From the NCBI GenBank assembly GCA_964035545.1, contig OZ037772.1, forward strand, positions 7,920,889-7,984,888: a DNA stretch of 64,000 bases. Reading direction: 5' to 3'. The translations under genes and the position numbers were made by a program. The notes beneath the pieces were generated by a model. The model searched no databases. It worked only from the letters and a program-made list of their open reading frames with translations, and had not been told where the DNA came from. Shown here piece by piece: positions 1-41,900 of this stretch. The DNA comes from Bugula neritina. Taxonomy: Eukaryota > Animalia > Bryozoa. Numbering within the stretch: the stretch's first letter is position 1; every line of letters begins with the position of its first letter.

Positions 1-1985
1 AAATTAACCAGACTCACATCTGAAAACATCGGCAAGATAAAGTTTTCTTGACAAGTGGCTGTTGAGAATTGATCTTTAATCAAAAATGTAATTTTATGTT
101 TCAAGTTATAAATCATTTACTGAAGGGTTATCATATTTATGCTTATAAGCATTACACTTGGTCAATGTTTTCTAATTATTAAAGTGAACATCAGTTAAAG
201 CTATGAAGGACAAAAAGCAAGTGTCAACCACTATTGCGTCACAAAACAATTATTTTTACAAGAACATGTGCAATTTTGTTTACCTCCCAACGTCAATTTA
301 TAGATGGAAGTTTTTCCAGTAATAAAGAACCCAGAAGGAGACTTTGCCATGTGCATTGGTAACATCACCTTACACTTACTAATAGAATTTTCATAGTCAA
401 TGCCAGTTACTTCTGGAGAAGTACAGACAGAAGATACTTTGTTTTGGTTCAAATCAACCAATCGTATTGCGCTGTTTCCATAATCCGCCACCAAGATTAT
501 ATTATCTGTTATAAAAGTAATGTGCTTTGGGTTATCCACTTTAGAGATGTTGAGGAAGCCATCAGAGTATCCTGCACGATCAATGGAGAGAAGATATTTA
601 AACTTACTCCACTCCCCAAGCCGAAGAATCAAGACGTTGGTCTTGGTAGCCAGATAAAGTATTTTTAATGACAAGTTTATGACAAAACTGTGCACAGTCT
701 TTCTAAAAGAGGAGAGCGTAATGACATACCAAGTATAATCTCTAAAACAAAGACATTTGATTTTGCCAGCATTGTTATCGTATAAGTAGATCTCATTGGG
801 TTGGTTTGAGCGCCTCACCAGCTCTATAGGTTTCCCCAGCTTGGCGACATCAAACTTGCCGCCATTATCACCGTTATTTTTGCACCTCCCAGTTACGTAG
901 CTTGTTTTGTTGTTTTTGCGATCCAAGTCTCGTATGCAATGATTAGAATTGTCAGCAATCCATAAACGCCCATCTTCTCGGGGTGACGGAATAATTCCAG
1001 AAATAACACCGAATCTAGCTACAGAACCAGTTCCTTCCTTGTAACCATTAGATATCGAACTACCAGCTAACAGTTGGAAACTTTTAAATTCTTTGGTCGT
1101 ATATAAAGCAAATCCTGCAGCAAGTAGGTAATGACCTTCAACGTATGGGTCTTGTGTCATGTAGTTAAAATTGATATTGGCTTCAGCTTGTAAATCAGTT
1201 CTTGTGTATACTTGCTCTATACTCTCAAACTTTACACTGAAAATCGATTAGTCAAAACAAAATATTAATTTGAATTTTAAAAAAAAACTCGTCAAGCAAA
1301 TTTAACTACAATGCTTCAGTATAGTGTTCAAATATACCTGCAATATTGATACAGCATCACAGCATAAAACTCTATAAACAACAGAAGTTCTTAATGCATT
1401 AGAAATTAAACAATAAAAACTATTGCTTCAGTCAAATCAGCATTTAACAAACTAATGAGTATATGTACTATTGGATTGAAAAAAAGCTCATCCCTGCAAG
1501 AATTCTCTGATTTATAGCGCTTTTGTTAAATCCTGCTAAGACGTTGTGTTTACTAAGCCTTATGCTCTAACCCCTTATAGGCAATTTTTAGACTTACCAA
1601 CATTAATATTTACTGATATTATAAAATCTTCATGTGCCCCAACTCGTGGTAAGTTTTTATGACAAAAATTGTTCAGTTTTTCATTAATTCTCACAAGTAT
1701 TGATTTTGCCAATTAAATATTTTTTCATTGTGTCACACTTATTCTATTAAAGATGTTAATAATTAATTCATACCTTCCTATAGTGTTTGTGTAGCGGAAT
1801 TTTCCTTTTACTGGTAGTAGATTCTCTACTAACTGCAATCAACAAGAATTATTATATGAGAAAATCATAAAAGTTAGGAATCAATTGCCATTACTAGGAT
1901 AAAATGACACAAATTATTAAAGATAAAAAATTGTTATTATTCCAATGTTACTTACATATAATAAAAACACTAACTTTTTAATCAT
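1..1985 (-). CDS. Gene A: NHL-repeat-type beta-propeller surface protein (3' end runs off the window)
   Basis: Exons 1985-1956 (MIKKLVFLLY), 1832-1774 (59 nt), 1236-284 (propeller: GYKEG..ARFG, LWIADNSNHCIR, DG..VDNP, LVADYGNSAIRLVDL). A probable exon 4 starts at 19 (ttttcag|AT, DVSLVN...). All GT/AG, phases 0/2/1. Confidence 0.85.
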
Positions 1986-3815
1986 CACGCTTAGAATTTG
2001 CACTTGAACGGGCAGCATAAAATAGCAATCTGGTATGGATTCAGATTGAGGTTTTCTAAAACTAAAATTGAGATGAAGAAAATTTTATTATTTTGCACAG
2101 ATGCTAGTAAAAAATACTAAAAAGACATATTTAGAATTTTTTAAAAGTGATGAAATGCCTGCAAATTTATTTAAAACATTTTAAATAAATATTTAGCTCA
2201 ACACCAAAAAAGCAAAATTAGGCAGAAATAAAAATAGAATCAATTAAATTAGATTTTATATTACCATTATATGTATTTTATGAATACCTAAAAAATATCT
2301 TTGCTGATATTCTGCTATAACTAGATGGTGTTTATGATGCGGTGTCACAAAACTCTGGTAGCAGTGTGACGAGTTCAAAAAGTCTGGTAGTCAGAAGTGT
2401 AAAGACAAGTAGCAGACAACTTGCTAGTCTAGTTGAGAGTAAATAGAGTTGTGAATATAAGTAGAATACTTTTTCAGCAAGATATGCACAGATCAACTTA
2501 TGAAAAAGACCTGACTTTTACAAGTAAAGCATCTGCTTTTATACTAAATTCATAAGTCTAAAAAATGCTACCACATTCCACACCGTGCGCATGTCTCGTG
2601 TAGAAAAGGCAATATTCATTAGCCAATAAATAGTGACTAAGAATGTAAACAATTATTGCGCAATAATACTTGCATAGGCTTGTGTGCCACACTAATTATA
2701 AGTGTAAGCTAAATAACAAAAGAGAGTGATATGTACTATAATAATTTATAAAGTAGAATTTGTGGCATGCAGCAGAAGTTGAATTATTTGTCTAAATATT
2801 TTTTTTATGTAAAACATCCTAAATACTCATAGAAAATTTGGCATCTTTAAAAAAACTAATTATCTCAAAAATGTTCATAAAGCCACACCTTCCTGCTATG
2901 TAATTTTATGAGGTAAATCATTTTTTTAGTTTCTGAGATCAATCATGGAAATGAAAAGATTTAAAATCATCTGCATGTTTTTATAATTTCTAGAGACACA
3001 ATTTGAAGCATGGTTTTACGAGACACAACTTGGCTTTATCAAAGAACTACAGTTAATTTAATTAGAATCCAGGTAATTCTTTTTAATTATAATAATATTA
3101 TGATTGGTAAGGAAAAAACCATTTCAGGGCAGGAATTTATTGGTGCAAATATTAACCTGAAAATTAGTAGCTACATCAAATTTAAAAAATACTTTTTGTA
3201 TTTTAGTGTTTTTATAGCAATATGCTACTTTTGATTAACTTGAAACAATAGGGCTCAAAAATAGTTTTAGCATCATGCAACTAGTAATTTATTTTATACA
3301 AAAGCAGCTGTAAAATGTTATGTATAAAAGTATTGAATATCAAAGTGGGAGGTGCTCCGGCAATCTTTTTCACCTTGACCTTCAGATCCGACTTTAGCCT
3401 GCATATGACTGACTTTCTGATATTGACCCTGAAACTAAAAACACATGGCACTTATATTCAATTACAGTAGTATAAAAAGTGAAGTAAATTAGCAATCTCT
3501 TTCTGGTATAAAACTTACACTGCTGAGAAATTAAAAAAAGCAGGATTCCTGGTATTTTGTTTGAAACTGAGATTACCTTATAAAATCCAATAATTTTTAT
3601 GGTTAATAATAAATTTGTTTTCTTTTAAATGTGAGGTTTAGTTTCTTACATTCAGTGTTTGCTTTATAACTTGATGAATCATAGGGTTTTGGTGTCTTTG
3701 ATGTCTTCTTATTACGTTTTATCTTTTGGTCATATCTTCCAAGATTAGCTGCAAGACAAAAAGTTTACTTTTTAAAAATAAATACATAATATATGATATA
3801 ATATATATATTTTTT

Positions 3816-4162
3816 GTGTGCATGTGTGTGTGTGTGCGTGTGCCATGCATGCTTGCGTGTGTGTGTTTCGTGCGCGCGTTTGCGCGTGTGCGCGTGTGCA
3901 GGTGTGTGCAAGTGTGTGCGTGTGCGCGTATGCGCATGTGGGTGTGCGTGTGTGTGTGCGTGTGCCATGCATGCTTGCGTGTGTGTGTGTTTCGTGCGCG
4001 CGTTTGCGCGTGTGCAGGTGTGTGCAAGTGTGTGCGTGTGCGCGTATGCGCATGTGGGTGTGCGTGTGCGTGTGCGAGTGCGTGTGCGTGTGGGTGTGCG
4101 TGTGCGTGTGCGTGTGCGTGTGCGTGTGTGTGTGCGTGTGCGTGTGCGTGTGTGTGTGTGTG
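3816..4162. repeat. Compound (TG)/(CG) microsatellite with internal higher-order repeats
   Basis: GTGTGC/GTGCGT runs. The duplicated position (about 8785-8844) has only a short version. Confidence 0.95.
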
Positions 4163-4179
4163 TTAGTAATCTAGAAGGT

Positions 4180-6973
4180 TTAAACTGAAAACAGACCAGT
4201 TCCAGATCTCCAGAAATTAGACCTTCCATCTATAAATAGACCATTGGATTGAAAACTCTGAAATCTTCGTCTCCGTTTCTTTTTCTTTTTATGTTTTTTA
4301 GAACCTTTCTGTGACGCTGCAACACCAAGGCAGAAAGTATTGTATTCTTGAATAACCAAATTCTACTCCTTGAAATTTAAAGTTAATCAGCAAATTTTCT
4401 CACTCTTTTTAAGTCTCGTCAGTAAGACTGCAACTGGAATCGCCAGTAGAGCTAATAATATTCCTCCGCCAACATATAAGAGTGTTTTAGTGTGCTTGAT
4501 AAACCACTTGGCTACTGAACTGCCTCCAAGTTTTGTCTCACCCTGCTCTTCAACTGTGGAATTGCCATTCACCGTAGGTTGTGAATCTACAAAACCTTTT
4601 GCTTATAGCAATCTGTTTACTGCAGTTCAGCAGCCAGACAAACATTAGCTATGATTATAAAGTTTCTTGTTTACATAATATGTTTTTAGATTGATGCAAT
4701 TCTATTGAGATCAATTTTTTAAGCAGCTATTCATACTTTAAAAAAAAGTCTTGAGTCCTAGAGCACATCTTTTGCTGCGCTAAAGTGACAAATGTCCAAT
4801 CACGTAATTCTCTATTACATTTTATATAAAGAACTATTTTTTTCAAATATAAGTCATGTCTATGCTTTTGCTTTTCTGAACTATGACGTTTAAAATATAT
4901 AGCATCAATCACCTTAATTATATGACATTTTAAGTTATAAATCATTTACTGAAGGGTTATCATATTTATGCTTATAAGCATTTCACTTGGTCAATGTATT
5001 CTAATTAATTTATTGAACATCAGTTAAAGCTATGAAGTACAAAAAAGCAACCAATATTGTGTCACAAGAAAATAATTTTTGCAAGAACATGTGCAATTTT
5101 GTTTACCTCTCAACGTCAATTTATAGATAGAAGTTGTTCCAGTAATAAAGAACCCAGAAGGAGACCTTGCCATGTGCATTGGTAACATCACCTTACACTT
5201 ACTAATGGAATTTTCATAGTCAATGCCAGTTACTTCTGGAGAAGTACAGACAGAAGATACTTTTTTTTGGTTCAAATCAACCAATCGTATTGCGCTGTTC
5301 CCATAATCCGCCACCAAGATTATATTATCTGTTATAAAAGTAATGTGCTTTGGGTTATCTACTTTAGAGATGTTGAAGAAGCCATCAGAGTATCCTGTAC
5401 AATCAATGGAGAGAAGATATTTAAATTTACTCCACTCCCCAAGCCGAAGAATCAAGACGTTGGTATTGGTAGCCAGATAAAGTATTTTTAATGACAAGTT
5501 TATGACAAAACTGTGCACATTCTTTGTAAAAGAGGAGAGCGTAATGACATACCAAGAATGATCTCTAAAACAAAGACATTTGATTTTGCCAGCATTGTTA
5601 TCGTATAAATAGATCTCATTGGGTTGGTTTGAGCGGCTCACCAGCTCAATAGGTTTTCCCAGCTTCGCGACATCAAACTTGCCGCCAATATCATCGCTAT
5701 TTTCGCACTCCCCAGTCACGTAGCTTGTTTTGTTGTTTTTGCGATCCAAGTCTCGTATGCAATGATTAGAGTTATCCGCAATCCATAAATGCCCATACTC
5801 TCGGGGTGACGGAATGATTCCAGAAATAACACCGAATCTAGCTACAGAACCAGTTCCTTCTTTGTAACCATTAGATATTGAACTACCAGCTAACAGTTGG
5901 AAACGTTTAAATTCTTTGGTCGTATATAAAGCAAATCCTGCAGTAAGTAGATAATGACCTTCGACATCTGGATCTTGGGTCATGTAGTTAAAATTGATAT
6001 TGGCTTCGACTTCTTGCTTCGTTCTTGTGTATACTTGCTCTATACTCTCAAACTTTATACTGAAACCCAATTAGTCAAAACAAAATAGTAAGTTAAATTT
6101 TGAAAAAAAAACTCAACAAGCAAATTTAACCACAATGCTTCAGTATAGTGTTCAAATATACCAGCGATATTGATAGAGCATCACAGCATAAAACTCTAAC
6201 AACAGAAGTTCTTAATGCATTAGAAATTAAACCATAAAAGGTATTGTTTCATTCAAATCAGCTTTCAATAAAATAATGAGTAAACATAATATTAGATTTA
6301 AAATAAACTAATGTAAATTTATAGTAACTATTTCTGTGATCATTCCTTGACAGAAAAGGGTTTCTGTTAAATCGAGCGGGGTAATTTTTCAAATGGGGCA
6401 CAGGAGTAATTATGACTGAATGCTGTTTTTAGCATTACCAATTGCTTGCAGAAGGTTTGAGCCCATGACATTTTGTTTGCTAACCCTTACACTCTAACCC
6501 CTTATAGGCCACGGCAGCTCATCTTTAAAATAAAAGGCAGTGCCGAATAGTTGTGGAATAACAATTAACCTATTGTAATTTCACTAAAACTAATATTTTC
6601 TGATATTAAAAAATCTTTATGTGCTCCAACTTGTTGTGAGTTATAGTGACAAATGTGGCTCAGGTTTCTACTGATCCTAACAGGTCATGATCTTGCCAAC
6701 TAAGTGTTTTTTCATTGTGTCATACTTATTCTATTAAAGATGTTAATAATTAATCCATACCTTCCTATGGTGTTTGAATAGTGGAATTTTCCTATTACTG
6801 GTAGTAGAATCTCTACTAACTGCAACCAACAAAAATTATTTTATGAGAAAATTGTAGAAGTTAGGAATCGATTGCCATTACTAAGATAAAATGACACAAA
6901 TTATTAAAGATAAAAAAATTGTTATTATTCCAATGTTACTTACATATAATAAAAACACTAACATTTTAGTCAT
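4180..6973 (-). CDS. Gene B: type I membrane NHL-propeller receptor, ~453 aa (A/C chimera)
   Basis: Exons 6973-6944, 6819-6761, 6059-5107, 4586-4404 (stalk + TM LLYVGGGILLALLAIPVAVLL), 4316-4180 (KKHKKKKKRRRR...GLFSV*). Total 1362 nt, in frame. Confidence 0.88.
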
Positions 6974-8860
6974 CACACTTAGAATTTGCACTTGACTTGG
7001 GCAGCATAAAATAACAATTTGGTATGGATTCAGATAGACGTTTTCTAAAACTCAAATCGAGATGAAAACAATTTTATTATTTTGCATAGATGCTAGTAAA
7101 AAATACTAAAAAGACATATTTAGAATTTTTTAAAAGTGATGAAATGCCAAAGAATTTATTTAAAACATTTTTAATAAATATTGAGCTCAACACCAACAAA
7201 GTAAAATTTGGCAAAAATAAAGATAGAATCAATTAAATATTATATTACCATTATATTTATTTTATGAATACCTAAAAAAAATCTTTACTGATATCCTGCT
7301 CTAATTGAATGGTGATTATGATGCAGTGTCACAAAACTATAGTAGCAGTGTGACGAGTTCGAAAAGTCTGGTAGTCAGAAGTGTATAGACAAGTAGCATA
7401 CAGCTTACTAATCCAGTTGAGAGTAAATAGAGTTGTGAATATATGTAAACTTTATTTCTCTAGCAAGATATGCACCGATCAACTTATAAAAATGAATTGA
7501 CTTTCTAAAGCAAAGCATCGGCTTTCATTCTAAATTGATATGTCTAGAAAATACAACCACATTCCACACTGTGCATGACTCAAGTAGAATAGGCACTATT
7601 CATTAGCCAATAAAGAGTGACTAAAAATGTAAACAATTATTGCCCAATAATACTTGCATAGGGTTGTGTGCCATGCTAATTATAAGCCAAATAACAAAAG
7701 AGAGATATATATACAATAACACTTTATATAGTAGAATTTGTGGCATGCAGCAAAAGTTGATTTATTTGCCTAAATACTTTTTTATGTAAAACATCCTAAA
7801 TACTCATAGGAAACTTGGCTTTCAAAAAACTATATCTAAAAGATTTTCATAAAACCAAATCTTCCTGCTATGTAATTTTATGAGGCATATCACTTTTTAA
7901 CTTTTGAGATCAATCATGGAAATGAAAAGATTTAAATTCATCTGCATATTTTTTTAATTTTTAGAGACACAACTTGGCTTTATTAAAGAACTACAGTTAA
8001 TTTATTTAGAATCCAGGTAATGTTTTTTAATTATAATGATATTATGATTGGTAAGGAAAAAACTATTTCAGAGCAGAAATTTATTGGTGCAAATATTAAC
8101 CTGAAAATTAGTAGCTACATCAAATTTAAAAAATACCTTTTATATTTTGGTGTTTTACATCAATATGCTACTTTTGATTAAACTAAATCAATGGGTCTCA
8201 AAAAAGTTTTAGCATCATGCAGCTAGTGATTTATTTTATACAAAAGCAACTGTAAAATTTTATGTATAAAAATAATGAATATCAAAGTGGGAGGTGCTAC
8301 GGCAATCTTTTTCACCTTGACCTTCATATCCGACCTTAGCCTGCATATGACTGACTTTCTGATATTGACCCTGAAACTAAAAACACATGGCACTTATATT
8401 CAATTACAGTAGTATAAAAATGGAAGTAAATTAGCAAAAGCATAATAGTTTTTAATTTCAGCATTCTCTTTCTGGTATAAAAATTACACTGCAGAGATAT
8501 TAAAAAAAAGCAGAATTCCTGGCATTTTGTTTGAAACTGAGATGGCTTTATAAAATTCAATAATTTTAATTTTTTGGTTAATAATAAATTTATTTTCTTT
8601 TAAATGTGAGGTTAGTTTCTTACATTCAGTGTTTGCTTTATAACTTGATGAATCATAGGGTTTTGATGTCCTTGATGTCTTTTTATTACGTTTTATCTTT
8701 TGGCCAAATCTTCCAAGATTAGCTGCAAGACAAAAAACTTACTTTTTAAAAATAAATACATAATATATGATATAATATATAGATTTGTGTGTATGCATGG
8801 GTGCGTGTGTGTGCGTGCATGAGTGTGTGCGTGTGTGTGTGTGTCGGTAATCTAGAAGGT

Positions 8861-11798
8861 TCAAACTAAAAACAGACCAGTTCCAGATTTCCAGAAATTA
8901 GACCTTCCATCTCCAAATAGACCATTGGATTGAAAACTCTGAAATCTTCGTCGCCGTTTCTTTTTCTTTTTCTGTTTTTTAGAACCTTTCTGTGTTGCTG
9001 CAACAACAAGGCAGAAAATATTATATCCTTGGATTACCAAATTTCAATCCTTAAAATTTAAAGTTAATCAGCAAAATTTCTCACTCTTTTCAAGTCTCGT
9101 AAGTAAGACTGCAACTGGAATCGCCAGTAGAGCTAATAATATTCCTCCGCCAACATATAAGAGTGTTTTAGTGTGCTTGATAAACCACTTGGCTACTGAA
9201 CTGCCTCCAAGTTTTGTCTCACCCTGCTCTTCAACTGTGGAATTGCCATTCACCGTAGTTTTTGGATCTACAAAACTGTTTGCTTATAGCAATCTGTTTA
9301 CTGCAGTTCAGCAGCCAGACAGACATTAGCTCTGATTATAAAGTTTCTTGTTTACATAAGTTTTTAGATTTATTCTAATGAATTGAGATTAAAATTTTTA
9401 CACAACCGCTTATACTTTAACACAAGTCTCAAGTAGTAGAGCGCATTTTTTTTGCTTCAAATTGCATGTGTTCAATTACATAATCCCCTATAATATTTTA
9501 CATGAAAAAAAAATTTTAAATAAAAATTATATCTATTTTCTTGCTTTTCTGAACTATGACATTTAAAATATGTAGTATCATAATTGTTCATTTTATACAG
9601 CTCCACAGTTGCTTTTCATGCCATGCTACGGCGCCAAACAAAATATTAATACCGAACTTGACAACTTGAGAATTTGTTTAATTTTTCAATTTTTAGATAT
9701 TAAGGGAGAAGCAGTGATAATCTAGGAGTTTGAGCATTAACTTAATTAACACATATAGTAAATTGTTCAATCATCATGAAATTTCATTGGTGATTTTAAT
9801 AAAGAGATCTAGTCATGTAAGTTCTCCTTTACCAAAATAGAGAACTACTTTAATGAGGCTTTACCGTCAAAGGTGCTCACATGGATGTCGGCTATAAAAA
9901 AACTATAGTTTGTTTATTAGATATTCAGCAAAATGCTGTTATTAATAGACACTTGCGTTTTACCTACCTCTGTACTTCATGACTGAGATGGCATCTTTAC
10001 CTATTATATAAATACTTGACATGTCATCTGAGAGCAATAGATCCACTGGCTGAAATAGCGCGCAATCCTTTATAGAGTTTCCAGTCTTGCCTAATTTTGC
10101 TACAGATGGAATGCATATAGAATAAACCTTTGAGTTTTTTAAATCAACTAATCTCAAAATTTCATTGTCTCTGTCAGCCACCAAAAACAGATCATTTGAA
10201 AGAAAGCGTATAGCCATCGGTGATGCAAACAACGCGTCGGCTAAGGATCCATCGTTATGCCCGCTGGTGCCTCTATTAGCAACAACTTTCGCTCCGTGTT
10301 TCCAGGGCTTTGCCGAGAACTTAGAAATGCCATTTGCATGTGTAAAGTATAAAAACTCTCCTTCTTGGTCAAAGGCTAAACCATTTACGCTCCCCGTATA
10401 TTTAACGATGCTAACTACTCGCCAAGCACCATCCTCTTTGCAGACACATTTCAGTGTGTTGCAGCCATTGTCAAAAAAGTATATTTCATATTCTGAATTT
10501 GGCCTGTATACTAAATCAAACGGGAAGCAGAGCTCGCTGGTCAGAAGATCTGAGTCCCAGTTACCTCGAGTAGTGCAAGTTCCTACCACACGTGACGTAG
10601 AATTTTGTACCCGGTTTACACTTCTCAAACAAGCATTACTGTGATCTGCCAGCCACACCTCTCTTGTTTGATGGAGTGGAGAAAGGATTCCCGTTATTGC
10701 TCCAAATTTTGCTTTATCCCCATGAGCCTCAGAATAACCCCCGTTTAGAATATTTCCAGCAATAAGATCAAAGCTTGTAAAATCCCTGGTAGTATACAAC
10801 GCAGACCCCAGAACTATTAAATAGTTCCCTTCAACGTAGCCATCTTTAGCAACTTTTCTAAACCACTTTTTTGACTCAATGTAATCTTTTCTACGTTCAT
10901 ATATTTCTGTTACTTCGTTAAAGTTGAAACTGAAAAAAAATTAACGAGTTTCAATCTAAAGCAAATAAACTTAAGTTTATCTGCCATAAAAATATGTCTA
11001 AAGAAAATTTAGATTTAAATATACTAAAAGACTTGAGACATTATTTTTAGATTAAATCACTTTTCAAAGCAAGAGAACAGCCTTTTCTGTGTAAACAAAA
11101 AGTTATAATCACGTTTGCAACCTTTAGCTTTGAATTAGTTACATATATTAGGATATATTTTATCTGCTGCTGTAATTATAGTGAATAGCTTTAATTATCA
11201 GGTATTTTAACTAAAAAAGTTTATTCAAGTCTACAAACAAAAAACTCTATTTTTCTTAGTTGGATTGTGCTCTACTCAACTTTGCATTTCATAGGTATAT
11301 CAACCCATCTACCAGAATGTAATTAGGTATATCTCACTTTATACATACACCTATAAGGTGTACTCACCCTGAAACATTGGTTGCATATATGACTTCGCTT
11401 TTGCCAAGAGAGAATGCTACACAGAGCTAAAACAAATGTATAAATTGAATCTATATTGAGAAAATTCACATTAAACTGCCAAGTGCTATCATGGCCTTTT
11501 CAAGATATCAAATTATATATATATCAAACAACCATTTTTAAAACATACTGTTCCGATTTGGGATTTGCTTTTAAATTTAAGTTTTTTTATGTTGTCACCT
11601 TGTTTTATTTAGCATGGGTAACCTTAGTTTTCTAAATGATCAAAGATGTGGTACTAAAATTAGTATTCATGTTAGGGGTCATTAGGCATAAAAACTGATA
11701 ATTAAGTATAACTACTTTTGTGTTACAAAAAAAACCAAGTGTCTAATTATCTGAAAAGTACATAAACTCACTTGAATCAGTTCAAATATTAATTCCAT
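8861..11798 (-). CDS. Gene C: type I membrane NHL-propeller receptor, ~455 aa
   Basis: Exons 11798-11772 (MELIFELIQ), 11426-11368 (59 nt), 10929-9968 (VWLADHSNACLR, HNDGSLADALFASP, LVADRDNEILRLVDL), 9267-9085 (TM), 8997-8861 (polybasic tail, GLFLV*). Total 1368 nt, in frame. Confidence 0.87.
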
Positions 11799-12581
11799 TA
11801 TTCTGTTTTTCTGTAAGCCAATTAGCAATACTTCTTTTTTATTAAAGTTACTAAACTAGAATGCTATATTGTTTTTAAATATTTGCCAACTGGGGCAGTA
11901 ATTTCAACTATTTTAAAGAAAGTCTTTATTCAATAATTACATTTGACTAAAAATCTATTCACCGATTGTTGCAAAACCTAGAAAATAATTTTAGACCCTT
12001 GAACTATTTGGGCTACTATATTCATTATGTTTTATTTACCGTCCAACTTCAGCAAACCAAGGCTGATTGCTAGATGCAGCAAGTTATATTAGTTACCTTG
12101 TTACATTTCTTTTACTTTGCTGGTTCTAGTCTTAGAGTTCTCTTTGTAGAGCGTGTAGAAGGGTTATTTGATACTTACTAATTATAATTTATTATTTTCT
12201 TTTTTATATATAATTTAGTTCAATATGCAACACGTACTACACTTTATTTTGCTATCTTATTTATAAATACCCACTATAATACTTTCTGAGTCTGCAACGG
12301 GCCAGCTCAACTGTTAAGCATGGACTGTTGACTTTAGAATTGACAACTAGTAGCACCTAATATCTATCTTAACTGGCCCTCTCTTTTCTTATTCATTAAG
12401 GCAAATGTAGCCCAGGCATGCCCGAACTTGTTCATGACAGCTACTGATAATACAAGTGATTTTATCTACTAGTATTAGACTTTCTTTAAATTTACAATGA
12501 AATGTAGAAATATTAAAGATAACGGCACTTTGTCACAATTTGGTGAAGTTAAATTTCCATCTTTAAGGCTTATGTAAGAAA

Positions 12582-17365
<4,784 letters not shown>

Positions 17366-18356: not shown

Positions 18357-20187
18357 TCATACAAAGTTAACTGTTAGGCTCTTTAAACTAAAGTAGAAGA
18401 CAATGATCAGGTATGGCGTAGACAGCATCAACTTTGAACTGCAGCTGACTCGTAAAGTTGTTGTCTCTACTACGACAACTCTCTCTGCTAAAATACAAGA
18501 TTTGTTTCTTGAAAATAAATAAACGAGATAAATTTTTTTAAGAACTTTTTTTTATTGTGGAAAAAAGTAGTCAGTAGAGTAATTTTCTCATTTATTCCTT
18601 TCTAATAGCATTACTAGCTTGTACAAATTTCATGCAGTCACTATTCCTGTGAGACTCTATGATGAAACATGTATTTTAAAGTGAACTAACTACTTGTTTT
18701 CTTTATCATTACTGCCAATGACTATGTGTTTACTAGGCCAGTACTCTCATGGTTGCCAGGGTAATATATTTATGATGTTTGTCATGCATTCAACATAATT
18801 GCAGTTATTAGTAAACATACAAACACAATCACCCCATGCGAGGAGAATTTGGTATATTACCAGATTGACAACTTTGTACTGACATTCTGATTAAATCATA
18901 TGTGATATATGTTTTATACTTTAGTTCACTCGCTTGTCATAAAGAAAGTTATTCAAAACCTGTCCGTGATGAATAAAAAGAAATTTGGATATTTTGGAAA
19001 CATATTTGAATTATAGACTTTGTAAAGTTGGCGAAGCTCTTAGACCACATGCATGTAATAAAATATGATCAGTCAGAGTACAAAGTGAAAAAATAAAATA
19101 TTTAATGATTTTGTTACTGAAGATATATTTTACCTTTTAGAGTCAAGAGGTAATATGAGCTTGAGCCGAAAATAGCGATAGATAATTCATCTTGCTTGAA
19201 GAAAAAAGTTGGTTCAGCAATTTTGCATTCGTCGACATTTCCATCTATATCTTCAGTTATATTGGTTCGTGGAACGCATACAGTTGATATCTTATTATCT
19301 TGCAAATTAATAAGTCTAAGAACATTATTTCCATAGTCGGCAATAAAAAACATATAATTGGACAGAAAGAGCATATGTTGAGGATCTTGTAATGCCGCAT
19401 TGTCTAACTTGCCATCATTGTGACCATCATTTGGAGAAATTATAATATCTATGCCATCTTGCCATGATGATTTCATTCTGAGTAAACCATTGTCAGTTGT
19501 GGTCGCATACAAAAAATGTTCAGCTACATCAAAAGATATATAATTTACGGGCATGTCCAATTGGAGCAAAGTTACAACTTTCCATTCACCTCCAATAAGG
19601 CATAGACATCGTAAGGATGTTTCAAAGTTGTCGAAAAATACCAGCTCAGCTTTGCTAAATTTTCTTGATAACAACTGCTTTGGCTCACCAATTAATGCAT
19701 TTAAAAATGTACCATCCCTGCTTCCGCATTCCGTGCACTTTCCAGCAACCAAAGTGAAGCTGTAGCTCTGTAAATCAAACTCTTGAACACAGCAATTATC
19801 AACACTCAAGAACCAAATACGGTTGGGATCTATAGGTGAGACGATCCAACCGGTTACGTTCCTAAGATCATCATTGTCATAAGTTTGATTGTTTCCAAGC
19901 AGATCAAATGTAAGAAAGTTCATAGTTCTAAATATCCTCTCATTTTTTATCACTAAGTTGGCATTCGGTGTGGTAGGGTCTGCCATGACCTGCTCAATTT
20001 GATCTTCAGATATCTTATTTACGCTGTCAATTTTGATGCTAAAATCAAATGTTCAAAATGCATTATAAAATTGACAAAAACAGATATAAATAAAAATATA
20101 AATATAAATACAAATATAATTATAGAACAATTAAAAAAGTAATGTTCAGCATACTGTAAGCAGCAATTTGAAATAGATTTCATAATG

Positions 20188-20262
<75 letters not shown>

Positions 20263-20876
20263 TATATACACATGTATATATGCAGTGTCTTATATGCACC
20301 CATATATCAATATTATACTCACTTGTCATATAAAACCGATTTGCTGTAAATGACCTCCCCAAATGCAATTGCCAAAAAAGGCAAAGTCTAAAATGCAATT
20401 AATAAAATTACTTCAGTTAACAATGACCAGTGTTTTATTTTAAGCTCAATTATTATAAAAAACAAATTTCACAATTTCATTTGTCAAAATTATCATTATG
20501 ATCAGGAACTTTCTGGAATCACCAAAAACTTGTTTGTATAAAATAGCTTGCAAACAACGAATATGAGTTGTTCAGTAAACTTATTTGAAACAGAACTATT
20601 ATATACAACTCTTACAATTATTATGACCAGCATTCGCACAGTATTTTGGGGTCACATTAGGTCTACAAAATAAATACATATTTTGCATAGTTGAACTAAA
20701 AAAAACAATAAAAAATTACTAAGTAGCTTTTATTGCAAGCAACTACTATAAAGCAAAATTGAAATTGTACTTTGCTTTCACTAAATTCGTTGTTTAAAAA
20801 AAAATTTTTTGGTTTATTGGGAAGAAATAGCTCAATGACTTACCTCAATGTAATTTTGACTATTTTTTATAGTCAT
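18357..20876 (-). CDS. Gene E: NHL-propeller protein with GPI-signal-like C-terminus, ~377 aa
   Basis: Exons 20876-20844 (tentative first exon), 20387-20323 (65 nt, TLPFLAIAFGEVIY..), 20038-19134 (HNDGKLDNAALQDP, IADYGNNVLRLINL), 18487-18357 (..VSCSSKLMLSTPYLIIVFYFSLKSLTVNFV*). Confidence 0.78.
20187..20262. repeat. (GT)n microsatellite
   Basis: Direct reading. Confidence 0.97.
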
Positions 20877-27316: not shown

Positions 27317-30300
27317 CTACATGTACATTTGAACAGAGTAAATCTTTCTTTTTACGATATGATAATGAACTATCACAAGACTCACAATAAATAGAACTGT
27401 TATGACTAAAAACATTACAATGATCATAAACCCATTGAAGTATTGGTACTCTGTAGCCGCAGTTGTAATTATACGTGTAGTAGTTGTAGTAGTAGCAGTA
27501 GTTTGAATGTTTTTTCTAGTTGATGTCGGTTTTTTAGTGCTTGTTTTTGATACAATCTACAAAATATCAGAAATTTATCAAACTGAGGAAAAAAATTTGT
27601 TCTGATGCTAACATATTGCAAAAGTTGGTAGAAATTAGTTCAAGAGCAAAATATTCAACGAAGTTTTTTCTTTGGGAGTGAATAGAGTTATGCAAATCAA
27701 ATTTATTACCATTAGCCCCTAATTATTAGTATTTATATATCAGCTAACCCTTTTCATTATTTAGTTATTAGTTATCAGTATATTTACAGCAGGTATGAGC
27801 TATCAGTACATGAAAAACGCATACAGGTTTATATAGTTACATCTCTGTGAGAAGCTCCTAGTAAAAAGACTTATTCACATGTAGCACAGGCTAAAGTATG
27901 ACTGAATGCTCAACCTAACTCTATCATAGCTTTTACTGGCTTTTTGAACCGATGACAGAAGGTCTACTTTATAGCCAGGGCTGTAACCCTTATAGACTGT
28001 CGCTTACTCAATAAAGACCCTTTTGTACCAGGGATGATGGCTATATAAACTTGCATGAGGGAGTAAATCATACATAAGCTGAATGATTTAAATCAACCTG
28101 TGTTTTCTAATGCTGTTCTTTAAGATTTTCAACCAATTTTTTTAAAGAATTATTCTAAAATGCATTGCTCAAAACTTAAAAATGGTTTCTTGTTTGCAAC
28201 AAAGATTTAAAATATACTAGAATCCCATATTCAGTTCAAAGCATGAGGCAATGGCTAAAATTAAGATAAACATTAATTACTGATAAGACATCATTCTTAA
28301 ATATAATGAAGCAGCTGTGGTCTAAGGGTTAGAGCGTTTGCTTTGTAAACGCAAAGTCAGGGGTTTGAACCCCGACAAAGGCCATTGGTGATGTTAGGAA
28401 GAGCATCCAGTCATCATTGCTTTGTGCCTCATCTAAACAAGTCCTTAGCCCATTGTAACAAAAACCTTTTCTATCAGTAGTTTCTCACAGCGATAGCAAC
28501 TATAAACTTGCGTGAGCTTTTTTTAAACTTGAGTGAGAGTGAGTTAATAATTACTGATAAGATTTATGTTTTTACCCTGATGGTACCGATTCCATTATCG
28601 TCAGGGTCTGTTAAGTCAGGTGTGGTTGCTGGAAATGTCGGTTGACGTTTCGTTGTGATTCTTACCTAAAGAAGTTTTCAACGCAGAATCATGTAAATTA
28701 ACAGACCTTAATATACACTGAATCTAAAATTGTTATATACAGTTGAGTTTATAGAACTTTGAAACGGTAAAGATAGTGGATGCTGGATCAAAACCAATTA
28801 TTCTTTTTGAAAGAAGAAAAAACAAAATCAATTAATCTGCTATACGTTGTGGTGCTTTGTAAAACTTTCTGCTTAAGAAAATTTTGACGGAGTTTATACA
28901 TGATTGGATGTTTGAAGTGTGTCTACAAAAAAATTGTCATTTCATATACAAAAGGATATCTAAACAACATTGAAGTCGTTTTTCCTAAAAAGAACTGTTT
29001 AATCAAACTAGAGAGATATTTTCATAAAAAAAATATAAAAATGTCAAAATATATAAGTAAGGCAAAGCTTTTTCTACAAATATGTTATATGATCTAAGTC
29101 ACGTTCTTACAGTTATAAAAGTTTTTCGGTTTGTACAATAATCTAGTTTGATTTTTAAAATTATTCATCTTGATAGTTCAAATTGAGTCGAAATATTTAG
29201 TTTCAACCTACGGCAATAATGTATTTTTTGCTTGTAAAACAATTTCCCGGTTATTTCTTGTTTTGCAGCTAATTTTCTCATAAATAAAAAAGAAGACAGT
29301 GTTACTATTATTTTCATTTTGATGTTTTGACTTCACAAACTGTACTACCGTTGTTGGAGTCGTGGTTAGACGTCTGGTAGTTGGTTTTCTGGTGGTTTGA
29401 CGTTTTGTTGTAGTAGTAATAGGCAGTGTTGTTGAACTAGTTGTTGTAGAACTAGGTTCCGGTTTATAGTATCCTTTGTCTACAACATATGTTTTCTTGC
29501 AAAGAAAGTTCTCTTTATAATTTATGTGATATTAAAAAAATACACACAAATTTATAGTCACCATCTCTGTGGAAAATTCCTGATAAAAAGGGTTTTTGTT
29601 AAATCGGACTAAGGACAATTATTTAAATGAGACTCAAGAGCAATTATGAATGGATGCTTTTCCTAACATCACAAATGGCCTTTGTCGGGGATTTTAACCT
29701 ATGACCTCATGCTTATCAGGCAAATGCTTTGACCTCTAAACCATGGCTGCTCCCTATAATAGTTTATTTGACATTGCTTTTATTTAGTCTTTCTGTACCA
29801 ATGATACGCAAATGGCTTTGAAATTTCAAAGTTTACAGCTTTATTCATTTTTTTAAATTAGCACTCTAAACCTATCACGAATTAGTTTTAAATATTAGTT
29901 TTTAAGACTAACCTGAGTAGAATAATTGAAATGCTTCATATTCCCCTAAAATGAAGATGGAGGAGGATCGTCTCTTCTTGTAAAAGTAAAACGGGGAATT
30001 TATCTTACAGCCACTGATGTCTGAAGACACAGATATGTCATTGGCATTTGGGTGAGGAATGCAGATAGAAGAGATCTTTGTTTCAATGAGATCCACTAGC
30101 CTCAGCACATTGTTACCATAATCAGCTAACAAAAATAAGTCATCATTCAGAAATATCATATCTTTTGGGTCATTTACATTAGCTGTTGATAAGCGGCCAT
30201 CATTATGCCCTGCTACTGATTCGATGACGCTTTCATATCCATCTTGCCAGGTAGACTTGATTCGAAAAATGTTGGATTCTTCTGTGAGATAAAGATATTG

Positions 30301-38915: not shown

Positions 38916-41900
38916 ATGGACACAGATAACATATACTTCACTTTATCTATGACAGTTCTTTTAGTGAGTACATACCAAGTAGATGATGAAGTATGAATGC
39001 AGAGCTAAATTATTCATGTCGCCATTTTTCAACAAATTTCACTTGAACTTATTTTTCAATTTTTTGTTCAGATTACATATCTTCAAAAACTAAAACCAAA
39101 ATAAAACTCAAAAAGCTTTACTATTTTCACTATATTTGTAATAATTTTGTTATTTTTCTCAAATTTCACTTAGACTTTTTTATTTCTGTTTGTTTATTTG
39201 AATATTTTTGTACTAGGTATATGTTGAAAAAAGTTCTGCTATAGATGTGGAAATTTTTGAAGAGGAGATACAAGGGTAGGGAAATAATTCTGTCATTCTT
39301 TGAAATTTTACAATTTAATTTTTCTTTTAAAGCATCCTTTGGTGAATAAAACTAACTATAGCTAAAATCATGACAAACTTTGCATTCAAAAAGTTATATC
39401 TTTTGGAAAAAAACATTTAAATAACTTTACAATATATTTTTATAGGAAAAATTATAAAAGATTGTGATACTTAGTATTTTAATAACTAGTTTAATAACTA
39501 ATTCATAAAGAGCCTTTTATCTTTAGCATTATGATTTCATGGTGTTGCTTTGGCCTTGGTTTGATTAAATAGTTCTTGATGATTTCATAGTAAGCAACCA
39601 CTCATAATGAGTAAATTAATTTGGTTGTACTAATAATATGTACCTAATTATGTGTACTTTGATTGTGTAGAATCAAGTTTGACACCCTTTCGATTCTTCG
39701 ACAAGGCCAGACAACTTCCACTGCAGATATAACGGCGAGCCAGTTCAAATATATAACACCAGACAAGAGAGAGTATGGTAGATTCTTTCTGGTTGATCAG
39801 TGTGCGATATACCTATTCAACTCTGTGTCTAAAGAGACCACCCATGTAGTTGGCAGCAAACAAGTATGCGGTAACAGCGATGGAGTTGGTATAGCCGCGA
39901 GGTTCAGAACTATAGAATGTCTGTTTGTGTCTCCAGTGAACAAGAGCATTATCTGGATATTGGACTCAGGCAATCACTGTATCAAACAAGCAAATGTAGT
40001 AAGCAAGTCAGTCAAAAGCTTTGCAGGTTATTGCGGTCATAAGGGAGATCTGGATGGCCCCGTTTTGAAATCTATATTGGCAAATCCCAAGGTTATGACT
40101 CAGAATCCTCAAAATAACGAAGAAGCTTATTTCTACGACAACGATTACTACTCGATAAAAAAGTTATTTCTGAATATTGAAACGGGCACATGGTACATAC
40201 AGACATTAGCAACTTGGTCTCAACCCATTCTGGGAATATCCTTTGACCTCTCGGGTTCATTTATTTACTTAGCACACACAAGTGGATTATCTCGTATAGA
40301 TGTCAGTACGCTCTATATTGAAGACATCATTTTAGGCAATGGTCTGGGAAACAATGACGGCTCGTTGGAAGAAGCTAGCGTTTACAACGCAGGTCACATG
40401 ATCTTTCTTCATAATGACATCTTTATTATGTTAGACAGTAGTAACGCTAAGATTAGAGTAGTTAATCTTCAGTCTGGGATGATAACTTCCATATGTTTAG
40501 TACAGCTGAGAGAACCCTATGAGTTTGTGCCTGGCACTATAGACACCTGCAAGATGGGAAAACCAACTGGATTGACCCAACTTAAGGCTGAGACTGAAGG
40601 CGGGCAGAATTATTTTATTATTAGTTCTTACACCGCTCTTTACCAGCTATCATACACAGGTAAGTTTATTGTCCTAAATCACATAATCAAAGCAAATGGT
40701 TTTAAGATTTGGAGTAACTAAGTAATATATTATTTTTATTAAACTTTGAAAAAAGTTTGAAAAATTGAAATTTTGGACAGAGCTTTAAACAAAAAGCTTT
40801 CTTGCTATTTAATAGCCATATTGTTTATAATTAAAATTAATACCATTGTTGAAATAGTTTGAAGAAAGATACATATAATTTTGATAAGTTTGTCAGTCTG
40901 AGTTATTTGAATTTGAATATTTAAGGTAACAATAATTGTCAAGCATAAAATTTCTACTTAAAATTTTGAAATTTTGCATTTGAAATGTTTTTCTAGCTTT
41001 TCACATATGAAAATATATTACATCTTATTTTTTGCTAGGATCTTTTCAATCTGAAATATCAACAACCACCACAGACTCATCTTTGTTTGCCTTCATCAGA
41101 GACAAGGACTCTCCTCTGGGTAACTGGTTTTTATCCAATGGCATGACGCTGCTGTACTCTACAATTGGCATTGCTGTTTTTGGAATGATGGCAGCAGCCC
41201 TATACTACTTTAATAGGTCGGCTCCAGGTACGAATCCCGTTCAGTAAATTATACTCCATTTCAAACGTTCATATTTATATGGGCAAATACTCATTATATA
41301 AAAAAATCTCACGCACGATTATATTCACTATTCCTGTGAGAAACCCCTGATGGAAAGGGTTTTTATTAAAGTGCGCTAAGGACTTATTTTAATGGGGCAC
41401 AAGAGCAACTATGAGTGGATGATCTTCCTAACATCACCAATATCCTTTGTTGGGGTTCGAACCCATGACCTTCGTGTTTACTAGGCAAACACTCTAACCC
41501 CTAGACCACTGCTTCTCCTTAAGAGTTCAAACCCTAGGAGGTAGTTAAAAATATAATGTAGCAGTACATACCCGACAGATGAAGGTCAAACAAAGCTGCT
41601 GTGTTTATATAGTCAGTAGGTAAAGCTTGAAGCAATACTCTCTCTACATCTCTGTAGTTCTTCTCCCTGAAACTATAGCAAGAAATCTATTGTACCAAAA
41701 CATATAATTCTTATCTATGAATTAGTTAGGTTTTTAAGTAGTTTAGTTTTAGCATCTATATTAATAAATATTACCTGCGTGAGAATTGAAAACTTAAACT
41801 GAAAAGTTGAGAGGTATGGCTATAAAATGTTAAAGGCTCATTCTAATTCTAATTCTCTTGTTTACTAAGCAAACACTTTAAATACTAGACCACGGCTGCT

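Follow-up and report, generated by a model that had tools for sequence, protein, structure and literature searches.

Introduction

Hybrid genes of tandem arrays are well described in the haemoglobin (anti-Lepore), opsin and glycophorin loci, where a crossover shifted by one unit leaves the genes in the order first parent, hybrid, second parent, and where the exchange is homologous, taking place between highly similar paralogues. The general pattern in the KIR genes is that the ectodomain exons of one member are joined to the stem, transmembrane (TM) and tail exons of another. In this clustered family of surface receptors, hybrids have been attributed to recombination at Alu repeats within introns (Traherne et al. 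2010, PMC2816608). A new gene may also arise where a tandem duplication covers the 5' part of a gene together with the 3' part of the one next to it, the parents remaining intact (2017, PMC5460883).

Here, we have analysed three genes, A, B and C, located in a window of 64,000 nucleotides from the bryozoan Bugula neritina (assembly GCA_964035545.1, contig OZ037772.1, positions 7,920,889 to 7,984,888). The setting is a large clustered array of predicted cell-surface receptor genes with NHL propellers, a family of at least 64 members genome-wide; our literature search has found no description of an NHL-propeller receptor family of this type. The sequence comparison supports the reading of gene B as a chimera of A and C that arose from a duplication shifted by one array unit.

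Gene models of A, B and C

In the gene models, every splice site is GT-AG, the exons agree in size and stops are absent, and intron 3 is in phase 1 in all three genes. Their features are listed below in window coordinates, negative numbers being located to the left of the window.

Gene A
1956..1985, minus strand: exon 1, with the ATG and the start of the putative signal peptide (gene model)
1774..1832, minus strand: exon 2, 59 nt (gene model)
284..1236, minus strand: exon 3, NHL propeller ectodomain, predicted to be six-bladed, 953 nt (gene model, Pfam)
1..283, minus strand: intron 3 without its last 2-3 bases (gene model; locus L004)
-3..-200, outside the window and starting 4 bases left of it: exon 4 (stalk/TM), acceptor AATTTTAG
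about -1376..-1429, outside the window: exon 5

Gene B
6944..6973, minus strand: exon 1 (gene model)
6761..6819, minus strand: exon 2 (gene model)
5107..6059, minus strand: exon 3, A-type propeller, AF2 pLDDT 90.3 (Pfam, AF2, Foldseek, gene model)
4587..5106, minus strand: intron 3, hybrid, phase 1, donor from A and acceptor from C (three-way alignment, gene model)
4404..4586, minus strand: exon 4, C-type stalk and TM helix, 183 nt (gene model)
4197..4316, minus strand: exon 5, C-type polybasic cytoplasmic tail (gene model)
3397..3749, minus strand: conserved 3' region, either exons 6-7 or 3' UTR

Gene C
11772..11798, minus strand: exon 1, ATG at 11798 (gene model)
11368..11426, minus strand: exon 2 (gene model)
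9968..10929, minus strand: exon 3, divergent propeller, 33% identical to those of A and B (gene model)
9268..9967, minus strand: intron 3 (self-BLAST, three-way alignment)
9085..9267, minus strand: exon 4, stalk/TM (gene model)
8878..8997, minus strand: exon 5 (gene model)

Exons 1-3 of B are of A-type, with 90.2% protein identity to A over 347 aa, and its exons 4-5 are of C-type, with 92.1% identity to C over 101 aa; the propellers of A and C share 33% protein identity. An earlier note on this DNA had described B as an A-C chimera, had called the propeller of C very different from that of A, and had argued that the shared phase-1 intron keeps the fusion in frame; the identities bear out the first two points, and the intron phases, the GT-AG sites and a reading frame that is open over 448 codons bear out the third. 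Should the weak GTCTGT donor after exon 5 of B be skipped, the frame reaches a stop 8 codons further; the coding region may end in exon 5 or run on into 3651-3749 and 3397-3426. The conserved 3' region of B has 94-100% identity to its counterpart in C, located at 8339-8723. Intron 2 of B contains a repeat, within which no tRNA-like gene has been found.

In the sequence to the left of the window, gene A continues into an exon 4 that encodes a different stalk and a different TM helix, the best identity to B's being 29% over 45 aa; the downstream stalk/TM exon of A is therefore not equal to that of B and C. The same note had held A's exon 4 to differ from B's, which stands, and had placed its acceptor at base 19 (reading DVSLVN), which does not, as the reading frame from this acceptor meets a stop codon and the site lacks conservation in the outgroup. 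Since the real exon 4 is also unlike B's, the point on the difference between A and B is strengthened by the correction.

The receptor family

The Pfam NHL profile (PF01436, cut-off 20) scores A at 27.3 bits and B at 25.4 bits, above the cut-off, and C at 14.4 bits, below it; C still aligns with the family. The AF2 model of the B propeller is all-beta, with a pLDDT of 90.3 and a pTM of 0.89, and the top Foldseek matches of the predicted fold are the NHL domains of NHLRC2, SOQ1, TRIM-NHL proteins and teneurin (TM-scores 0.63-0.77). The modelled structure confirms a six-bladed NHL propeller as the predicted fold of the B ectodomain, the blade number being taken from the fold matches.

Judged from their sequences, A, B and C all have the architecture of type I transmembrane receptors: exons 1-2 are hydrophobic, forming the putative signal peptide, exon 4 of each gene shows a single TM helix in the hydropathy scan, and polybasic stretches follow the helix. 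Exons 4-5 contain no tyrosine in either the A or the B/C tails, the TM helix carries no charged residue in either type, and the tyrosines of the putative exon 6 fit neither ITIM nor ITAM. The tails are short, polybasic and free of tyrosine motifs, and the description of these parts as signalling modules is not sustained. Paired activating and inhibitory receptors of the KIR, Ly49 or SIRP type, which we have considered as a model, are rejected on the same grounds, i.e. no ITIM, no ITAM and no charged TM residue.

In a family of at least 64 members, A has the only propeller whose identity to that of B exceeds 36%, and the B/C-type exon 4 occurs in just two copies genome-wide. B is alone in having a tail swap of this sort among 37 family genes (276 kb), a sample that does not support a general recombination of modules in the family. 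A tail match between genes g24 and g27 has been discarded as a candidate swap: the matching sequence is a dispersed repeat that is also present inverted.

The duplicated unit and its junction

Self-BLAST has revealed two adjacent, collinear tandem copies of one 4.8 kb unit, located at 89-4907 and 4915-9580 and matching in three blocks at 87-92%: 89-1491 with 4915-6312 (92.0%), 1596-3866 with 6583-8840 (86.7%), and 4107-4907 with 8786-9580 (86.8%).

89..4907, minus strand: duplication unit 1, with the proximal part of A intron 3, A exons 3-1, the region upstream of A, the B tail exons and the distal, C-type part of B intron 3 (self-BLAST; per-feature identity)
4915..9580, minus strand: duplication unit 2, with the A-type part of B intron 3, B exons 3-1, the region upstream of B, the C tail exons and the distal part of C intron 3 (self-BLAST; per-feature identity)
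4908..4932, minus strand: duplication junction in B intron 3 (three-way alignment, BLAST ends, X1 contig)

The unit has one end inside A intron 3 and the other inside C intron 3, i.e. in two different genes, and the 5' part of one is joined to the 3' part of its neighbour; both parents are intact at the flanks, A with its own exon 4 and C with its own exons 1-3. Intron 3 of C is accordingly divided, 9268-9580 being common to B and 9581-9967 unique. At the junction, C-type sequence is located at the lower coordinates and A-type sequence at the higher: C-type homology ceases at 4907 and A-type homology begins between 4915 and 4933 (BLAST ends, three-way alignment), which brackets the junction within 25 nt after divergence. 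The first reading had set the switch at about 4908-4930, with a match to C intron 3 on its left and to A intron 3 on its right; it was right on the position, and the self-BLAST blocks agree with it on the two matches.

Between the unit copies, identity is 81-94% in non-coding DNA and 94-97% in exons. The non-coding identity is 88.4% in the A/B part and 86.6% in the B/C part, a similarity of divergence that is predicted by one event. The same data bear on a different history, in which the whole of gene A was duplicated and the 3' half of B was then converted to, or replaced by, C sequence. Such a later exchange could be hinted at by the low dS of 0.043 in the tail exons of B and C, the value for exon 3 being 0.13. 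However, the homology forms one uninterrupted unit, which takes in 1.4 kb of intergenic DNA upstream of both A and B as well as the tail introns (81-87% identity), and no remnant of an A-type exon 4 has been found downstream of B; divergence in the introns around the tail exons equals that of the remaining unit, which would limit any conversion to the exons. We consider this history very unlikely, and prefer a single duplication that delivered both halves of B together.

Read support and copy number

The reads come from three sequencing runs of one study, none of them recorded as RNA, which are kept as contigs and as such cannot reveal splice joints; two of them, X2 and X3, have no usable coverage of the region apart from high-copy repeats. 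In X1, contig record 2 spans the junction (4749-4957) with 0 mismatches at a depth of 58.5, although X1 is possibly from the same individual as the assembly and is not independent support in that case. The total X1 depth in the junction bin is 85, within the 72-117 of the other unique bins. Since 37 of the 40 variant letters in X1 are those of the other paralogue, both versions are present in the reads.

This evidence weighs on the possibility that B does not exist and that the assembly has placed two divergent haplotypes of one A..C interval in tandem. The region is a repetitive array, and the depth of the B-specific X1 contigs is roughly half that of the A-specific ones, as an artefact could produce. 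The depth, however, is higher in the A propeller than in the B propeller and lower in the B tail than in the C tail, and thus tracks gene B and does not separate unit 1 from unit 2. The flanks of the two copies are also non-homologous (the A tail against the C propeller), where true alleles would remain collinear beyond the unit ends; the region contains no Ns or gaps, and the assembly contains no third copy of the unit. With a contig crossing the junction, we regard an artefact as extremely unlikely and B as a real locus, which, given the half depth, may be absent from one haplotype.

Homology at the breakpoints

The length of the unit equals the array period (~4.8-5.4 kb), both breakpoints are located in the equivalent intron, and the two breakpoints share a 20-nt AT-rich patch with 16/20 identical positions; these observations favour the proposal of the earlier note, in which array units pair out of register and undergo a classical homologous unequal crossover (NAHR). 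Against it, the local alignment of A intron 3 with C intron 3 scores 15, where shuffled sequences score 13.7 +/- 1.7 and 57 of 200 reach 15; in the breakpoint windows, the observed score is reached by 147 of 500 shuffles, and the parental propellers are just 33% identical in protein. Because the two introns align no better than shuffled sequence, the exchange is, as far as these alignments tell, non-homologous or at most microhomology-mediated; NAHR is distinctly unlikely, and a duplication of one array unit by another route is preferred.

Polarity, age and selection

Contigs L005-L007, which derive from a related species (that of runs SRR4020080-84), keep the order of A over its exon 3, intron 3 and A-type exon 4 and on past them. 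Their match to B stops at 4968, ~35-50 nt short of the junction. As these contigs carry the A-type arrangement, their comparison with the window identifies the A propeller with the A tail as ancestral and B as derived. A protein search with the B propeller has returned one relative cluster only (P0001, 81%) and no transcript-derived protein, and the propeller and exon 4 of C, as queries, have returned no relatives, so that these searches provide no outgroup for C.

The dS between A and B is 0.13, against 0.44-0.47 to the outgroup, and the non-coding divergence between the copies is ~12%; the duplication is thus not very recent, and the idea of a swap caught in the act is not supported. Over this time, the coding sequence has gained 0 indels in 1345 nt, against 30 in 3026 nt of non-coding DNA (P about 1e-6; 1e-3 under drift of a single copy), and the omega between A and B is 0.31.

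B could nevertheless be a real chimeric locus and a functionless by-product, i.e. untranscribed, mis-spliced or drifting towards a pseudogene. Polarised changes number 8 synonymous and 8 non-synonymous in A, and 10 synonymous and 20 non-synonymous in B, whose propeller therefore has more than twice the non-synonymous changes of A; the B branch alone is not significantly off neutrality (one-sided P about 0.09, an estimate from counts), the tail exons of B and C, with no more than 12 changes between them, have an omega of about 0.9, and the half depth could mean that B is a non-fixed variant. On the other side, the 448-codon frame and the GT-AG sites are intact after a dS of 0.13, ~6.7 coding indels would be expected for one drifting copy where none is found, the exons are more similar than the non-coding DNA, and the TM helix is 100% conserved. 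On balance, a functionless B seems rather unlikely, and we favour a B that is maintained.

Proposed origin of gene B

A single tandem duplication of ~4.8 kb, joining an A-type 5' part to a C-type 3' part, is very probably what made B. The ancestor would have had two adjacent, very divergent members, one with an A-type propeller and an A-type tail, the other with a C-type propeller and a C-type tail. The duplicated segment would correspond to one array period, with breakpoints ~190 nt into A intron 3 and ~390 nt into C intron 3; its junction would have put the A-type promoter and exons 1-3 (putative signal peptide, NHL propeller) upstream of the C-type exons 4 onward, which would supply the stalk, the TM helix and the polybasic tail, while A and C would have been left intact at the flanks. 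The hybrid intron would combine the donor of A with the branch/acceptor region of C, and as it is in phase 1 in both parents, B should splice in frame; the predicted product is a type I membrane protein of ~450 aa. With no detectable homology to guide it, the exchange may have been illegitimate, by end joining or template switching. It would postdate the divergence from the nearest sequenced relative, and B has probably been kept open by selection since then, with a propeller that appears to have evolved about twice as fast as that of A. The comparisons demonstrate the structure of the locus, its polarity and relative age, and the conservation of the frame; from them we infer the splicing, expression and function of B, as well as the molecular mechanism of the exchange.

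Comparison with known systems

The mechanism behind B is a known one, i.e. textbook exon shuffling, as in anti-Lepore, the KIR hybrids and Drosophila chimeras, and the general interest of the locus is moderate for this reason. Its value lies in being a well-preserved natural case of exon shuffling via intronic breakpoints, where parents, product and junction are readable and the outgroup gives the polarity. It shows that, even where the receptor genes of an array are very divergent, the ectodomain of one can be combined anew with the anchor and tail of another member without sequence homology, which is made possible by the family-wide phase-1 introns. It also constitutes a natural experiment, in which A and B present almost the same binding domain on different stalks, TM helices and tails, and B and C have the same tail with unrelated binding domains.

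As in the duplication chimeras of PMC5460883, the junction unites parts of neighbours and both parents remain; unlike those, the parents of B belong to one receptor family with a common exon/intron architecture, which makes B a within-family domain swap, and while those are young, segregating variants, B is old (dS 0.13). With the anti-Lepore, opsin and glycophorin hybrids B shares the order of parent, hybrid and parent, but its parents are 33% identical and there is no detectable homology at the breakpoints. Repeats and high identity mediate the formation of the KIR hybrids, which switch between ITIM and charged-TM tails, whereas B has an NHL propeller in place of Ig domains, tails without such motifs and a non-homologous exchange.

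Like the KIR genes, the B locus may vary in copy number, as the read depth hints. By analogy, B might be a non-fixed presence/absence variant and the NHL cluster might have gene-content haplotypes like those of KIR/LRC, with the chimera at intermediate frequency and a diversifying propeller; we advance this tentatively, as a reading that is doubtful at present. If it were true, the cluster would be a polymorphic locus of self/non-self or pathogen recognition on a scaffold that is neither Ig nor LRR.

Among known NHL propellers, the predicted fold of B matches NHLRC2 (6gc1, TM-score 0.76) as well as TRIM71 and TRIM2 (0.63-0.66), while the sequence identity to NHLRC2, TRIM2/3/71, Thin and teneurin NHL domains is only 13-18%; unlike in the known NHL proteins, the propeller is here the single-exon, Cys-containing ectodomain of a predicted type I membrane protein.

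Gene architecture and receptor family

The window is AT-rich eukaryotic DNA (GC ~32%) at contig positions 7920889-7984888 of a 216 Mb assembly, and the models of the three neighbouring receptor genes, in order of transcription C, B and A, are as follows:

1-11798, minus strand: genes C, B and A
Exon 1, minus strand, 27-30 nt: carries the ATG
Exon 2, minus strand, 59 nt
Exon 3, minus strand, 953-962 nt: whole ectodomain in a single exon
Exon 4, minus strand, 183-198 nt: stalk and one transmembrane helix
Exon 5, minus strand, small: polybasic

Every splice site in these models is GT-AG, internal stops are absent, and introns 3, 4 and 5 are in phase 1 throughout. The large exons of A and B score above the Pfam cut-off for NHL, language-model features also place the large exon among the NHL families, and the predicted ectodomain fold is all-beta (pLDDT 90.3, pTM 0.89), its nearest solved structures being the NHL propellers of NHLRC2, SOQ1, TRIM71, TRIM2 and teneurin (structural TM up to 0.77); four cysteines are invariant in an alignment of 12 family members. 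Genome-wide, there are at least 64 propeller exons, nearly all of them open, and most are located in family clusters at 7.58-8.03 Mb and 8.71-8.73 Mb of the same contig; our literature searches turned up no gene cluster of type I receptors whose ectodomain is an NHL propeller. Between two family genes, at 15642-16730, four tandem 271-nt units of 99% identity are flanked by (TA)n runs.

Tandem duplication and chimeric structure of gene B

Self-comparison of positions 1-12500 gives three collinear blocks, which together represent a single tandem duplication whose unit of ~4.8 kb equals the gene spacing of the array:

Collinear blocks of the two units and amino acid identities among the three genes
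Block 1: unit 1 89-1491 = unit 2 4915-6312, 92.0% identity
Block 2: unit 1 1596-3866 = unit 2 6583-8840, 86.7% identity
Block 3: unit 1 4107-4907 = unit 2 8786-9580, 86.8% identity
A/B, exons 1-3 (347 aa): 90.2% amino acid identity
B/C, exons 4-5 (101 aa): 92.1% amino acid identity
A/C, propeller: 33% amino acid identity

Both flanks of the duplication are single-copy, the left one being the end of A intron 3 with the A tail and the right one the remainder of C intron 3 with the C propeller. An earlier note had described exons 1-3 of B as A-like, its stalk, transmembrane and tail exons as C-like and the C propeller as very different, with a switch of homology at ~4908-4930; the identities listed bear out this description, and so does the self-comparison together with a three-way alignment, in which B matches C to 4907 and clearly matches A from ~4933, the 25 nt in between being assignable to neither after divergence. 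The transmembrane helices of B and C are identical; genome-wide, the B/C-type exon 4 occurs in two copies, those of B and C, and the only propeller more than 36% identical to that of B is that of A. Since the unit extends ~1.4 kb beyond exon 1 on its 5' side, B also inherited the upstream region of A, and the hybrid intron 3 has its donor from A (GTAAAC) and its acceptor from C (TTTTGTAG). With predicted splicing, the frame of B is open over 448 codons; that the product is in frame is unsurprising given the intron phases common to the three genes, and the proposal that a shared phase-1 intron keeps the fusion in frame agrees with the gene models. We therefore regard the core of the earlier interpretation, an A/C chimera produced by a duplication shifted by one unit, as very probable.

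The units also differ in their repeats. A segment of ~270 nt in B intron 2 (6312-6583) is present in unit 2 and missing from unit 1; 6296-6502 matches 29548-29679, 41296-41502, 58725-58912 and 60285-60455, with very high depth in the three sequencing runs X1, X2 and X3. This segment is a short, dispersed repeat, which either entered unit 2 after the duplication or has been lost from A, and ARAGORN found no tRNA-like gene in it. The high-copy intergenic repeat at 7250-7711 (counterpart ~2260-2700), whose contig depth in X1-X3 is very high, up to tens of thousands, occurs in both units and is thus older than the duplication. The (TG/CG)n microsatellite of intron 5 measures ~360 nt in B (3800-4165) versus ~60 nt in C (8786-8846), and similar tracts are located at 20186-20264 and 57916-58078.

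The tail of gene A

The earlier note had started exon 4 of A at base 19 (DVSLVN) and considered it different from that of B. The difference holds, but the acceptor does not: the frame from base 19 runs into a stop codon, the site is not conserved in the related species, and a conserved acceptor, AATTTTAG, is located a few bases beyond it, which places the exon as listed.

-3 to -200, minus strand: A exon 4, 198 nt, phase 1 to phase 1, conserved acceptor
From ~-1376, minus strand: A exon 5, polybasic

A exon 4 encodes a glycosylation-rich stalk and a transmembrane helix, at most 29% identical to those of B over 45 aa; had the downstream exons of A equalled those of B and C, there would be no chimera, but the left neighbourhood holds a different tail. 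Further left, on the plus strand at -11036 to -2909, an entire family gene has been doubled in tandem by a second, older event, the copies having propellers (~-10950, ~-6450) of 84% nucleotide identity and transmembrane exons of ~80% amino acid identity; the tail region of the downstream copy, 3' of the propeller, contains a 92% identical inverted repeat pair (-5100 to -4540 and -3959 to -3413), further copies of which occur elsewhere in the cluster.

Read support

The read evidence consists of contigs from the three runs, which belong to one study and none of which is on record as RNA; X1 may be the same sample as the assembly. A 209-nt X1 contig covers the junction (4749-4957) with no mismatches at depth 58.5, the summed X1 depth is 85 in the junction bin versus 72-117 in other unique bins, and 37 of the 40 listed variant letters are the exact bases of the paralogous unit, so A- and B-type propellers and B- and C-type tails exist as distinct molecules in the reads. 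A junction invented by the assembler is ruled out by the mismatch-free contig and these paralogue letters. The artefact that the earlier note had named as fatal, two alleles laid in tandem by the assembly, is opposed by the same coverage of the junction, by the flanks of the units, which are not collinear, and by depth, which tracks gene B rather than unit 1 versus unit 2. In X1, B-specific contigs (junction, propeller and tail versions, 4170-8780) have depths of 58-76, A-type contigs 126-174 (an estimated ~125-140 after allowing for shared words), and the C tail 96-97 versus 64-67 for the B tail; contig depths are too crude to be decisive, and these values would fit a presence of B on only one haplotype of this individual.

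Polarity and age

The related-species protein P0001, 81% identical to the B propeller, is encoded on three Logan contigs (runs SRR4020080, SRR4020083 and SRR4020084). Their collinearity with A extends from 1278 to -1250 and takes in exon 3, intron 3, the A-type exon 4 and intron 4, but their match to B is limited to 6101-4968 and ends ~35-50 nt before the junction; the relative thus has the A-type arrangement. With a dS of 0.13 between A and B versus 0.44-0.47 from either to this outgroup, the duplication is younger than the split from the relative, yet far from fresh, and the chimera can hardly be called "caught in the act". In non-coding sequence, the two copies are 88.4% identical over the A/B part of the unit and 86.6% identical over the B/C part, as a single event predicts; a separate, later replacement of the B tail by C sequence is disfavoured by this similarity.

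Constraint on gene B

Between the unit copies, exons are 94-97% identical versus 81-94% for non-coding sequence, and 30 indels fall in the 3026 non-coding bases compared, while the 1345 coding bases have none (P ~1.6e-6; ~1.3e-3 with only one copy free of constraint). Omega for A versus B in exon 3 is 0.31. Polarised by the outgroup, synonymous and non-synonymous changes in exon 3 number 8 each on the A branch (omega ~0.28) and 10 and 20, respectively, on the B branch (omega ~0.55), so the B propeller is evolving about twice as fast, and the B branch alone is not significantly below neutral (estimated P ~0.09). Between the tail exons of B and C there are 9 non-synonymous and 3 synonymous changes, and three of the eight amino acid differences fall in the first four stalk codons, adjoining the new domain junction. 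On these sequence comparisons, B is probably a gene under selection that is somewhat relaxed or partly diversifying.

Local rates vary: the B/C tail exons (4197-4586 and 8878-9267) have a dS of 0.043, below the 0.13 of exon 3, and their flanking introns differ by 13-19%; in exon 3, a 300-nt stretch (A 389-688, B 5212-5511) is 97.3% identical versus 91-93% on each side, a difference due to stronger constraint there or to a short tract of gene conversion. The tails had been called signalling modules, a label that is not yet warranted: both types lack a Tyr-based motif and a charged transmembrane residue.

Generality and mechanism of the exchange

Our survey of 276 kb of the cluster gave 39 hits and 37 full-length propeller genes. 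Several younger duplicate pairs are among them, and in all of these the region downstream was co-duplicated:

Propeller amino acid identity of the younger pairs
g8/g9: 88%
g20/g21: 83%
L2/L1: 77%
g3/g4: 71%

Near-identical tails on unrelated propellers were found in the B/C pair only. The claim that the family can recombine its modules is thus upheld to the extent that a swap can happen; that swaps are common does not follow from one case among 37 genes.

The topology is what an unequal exchange offset by one unit of the array would give. The unequal crossover in intron 3 that had been proposed is, in its homologous sense, not borne out: A and C introns 3 align with a score of 15 versus 13.7 +/- 1.7 for shuffled sequence (reached by 57 of 200 shuffles), and the short AT-rich similarity at both breakpoints is within chance (score reached by 147 of 500 shuffles). 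The exchange was not guided by detectable homology, and its route may have been illegitimate sister-chromatid exchange, end joining or template switching, each of which fits the present sequence. Haemoglobin anti-Lepore and the KIR hybrid genes (PMC2816608) have the same topology as A-B-C, but, unlike in both of them, homology at the exchange point is lacking here; the chimera is a well-documented further case of an already known type of event.
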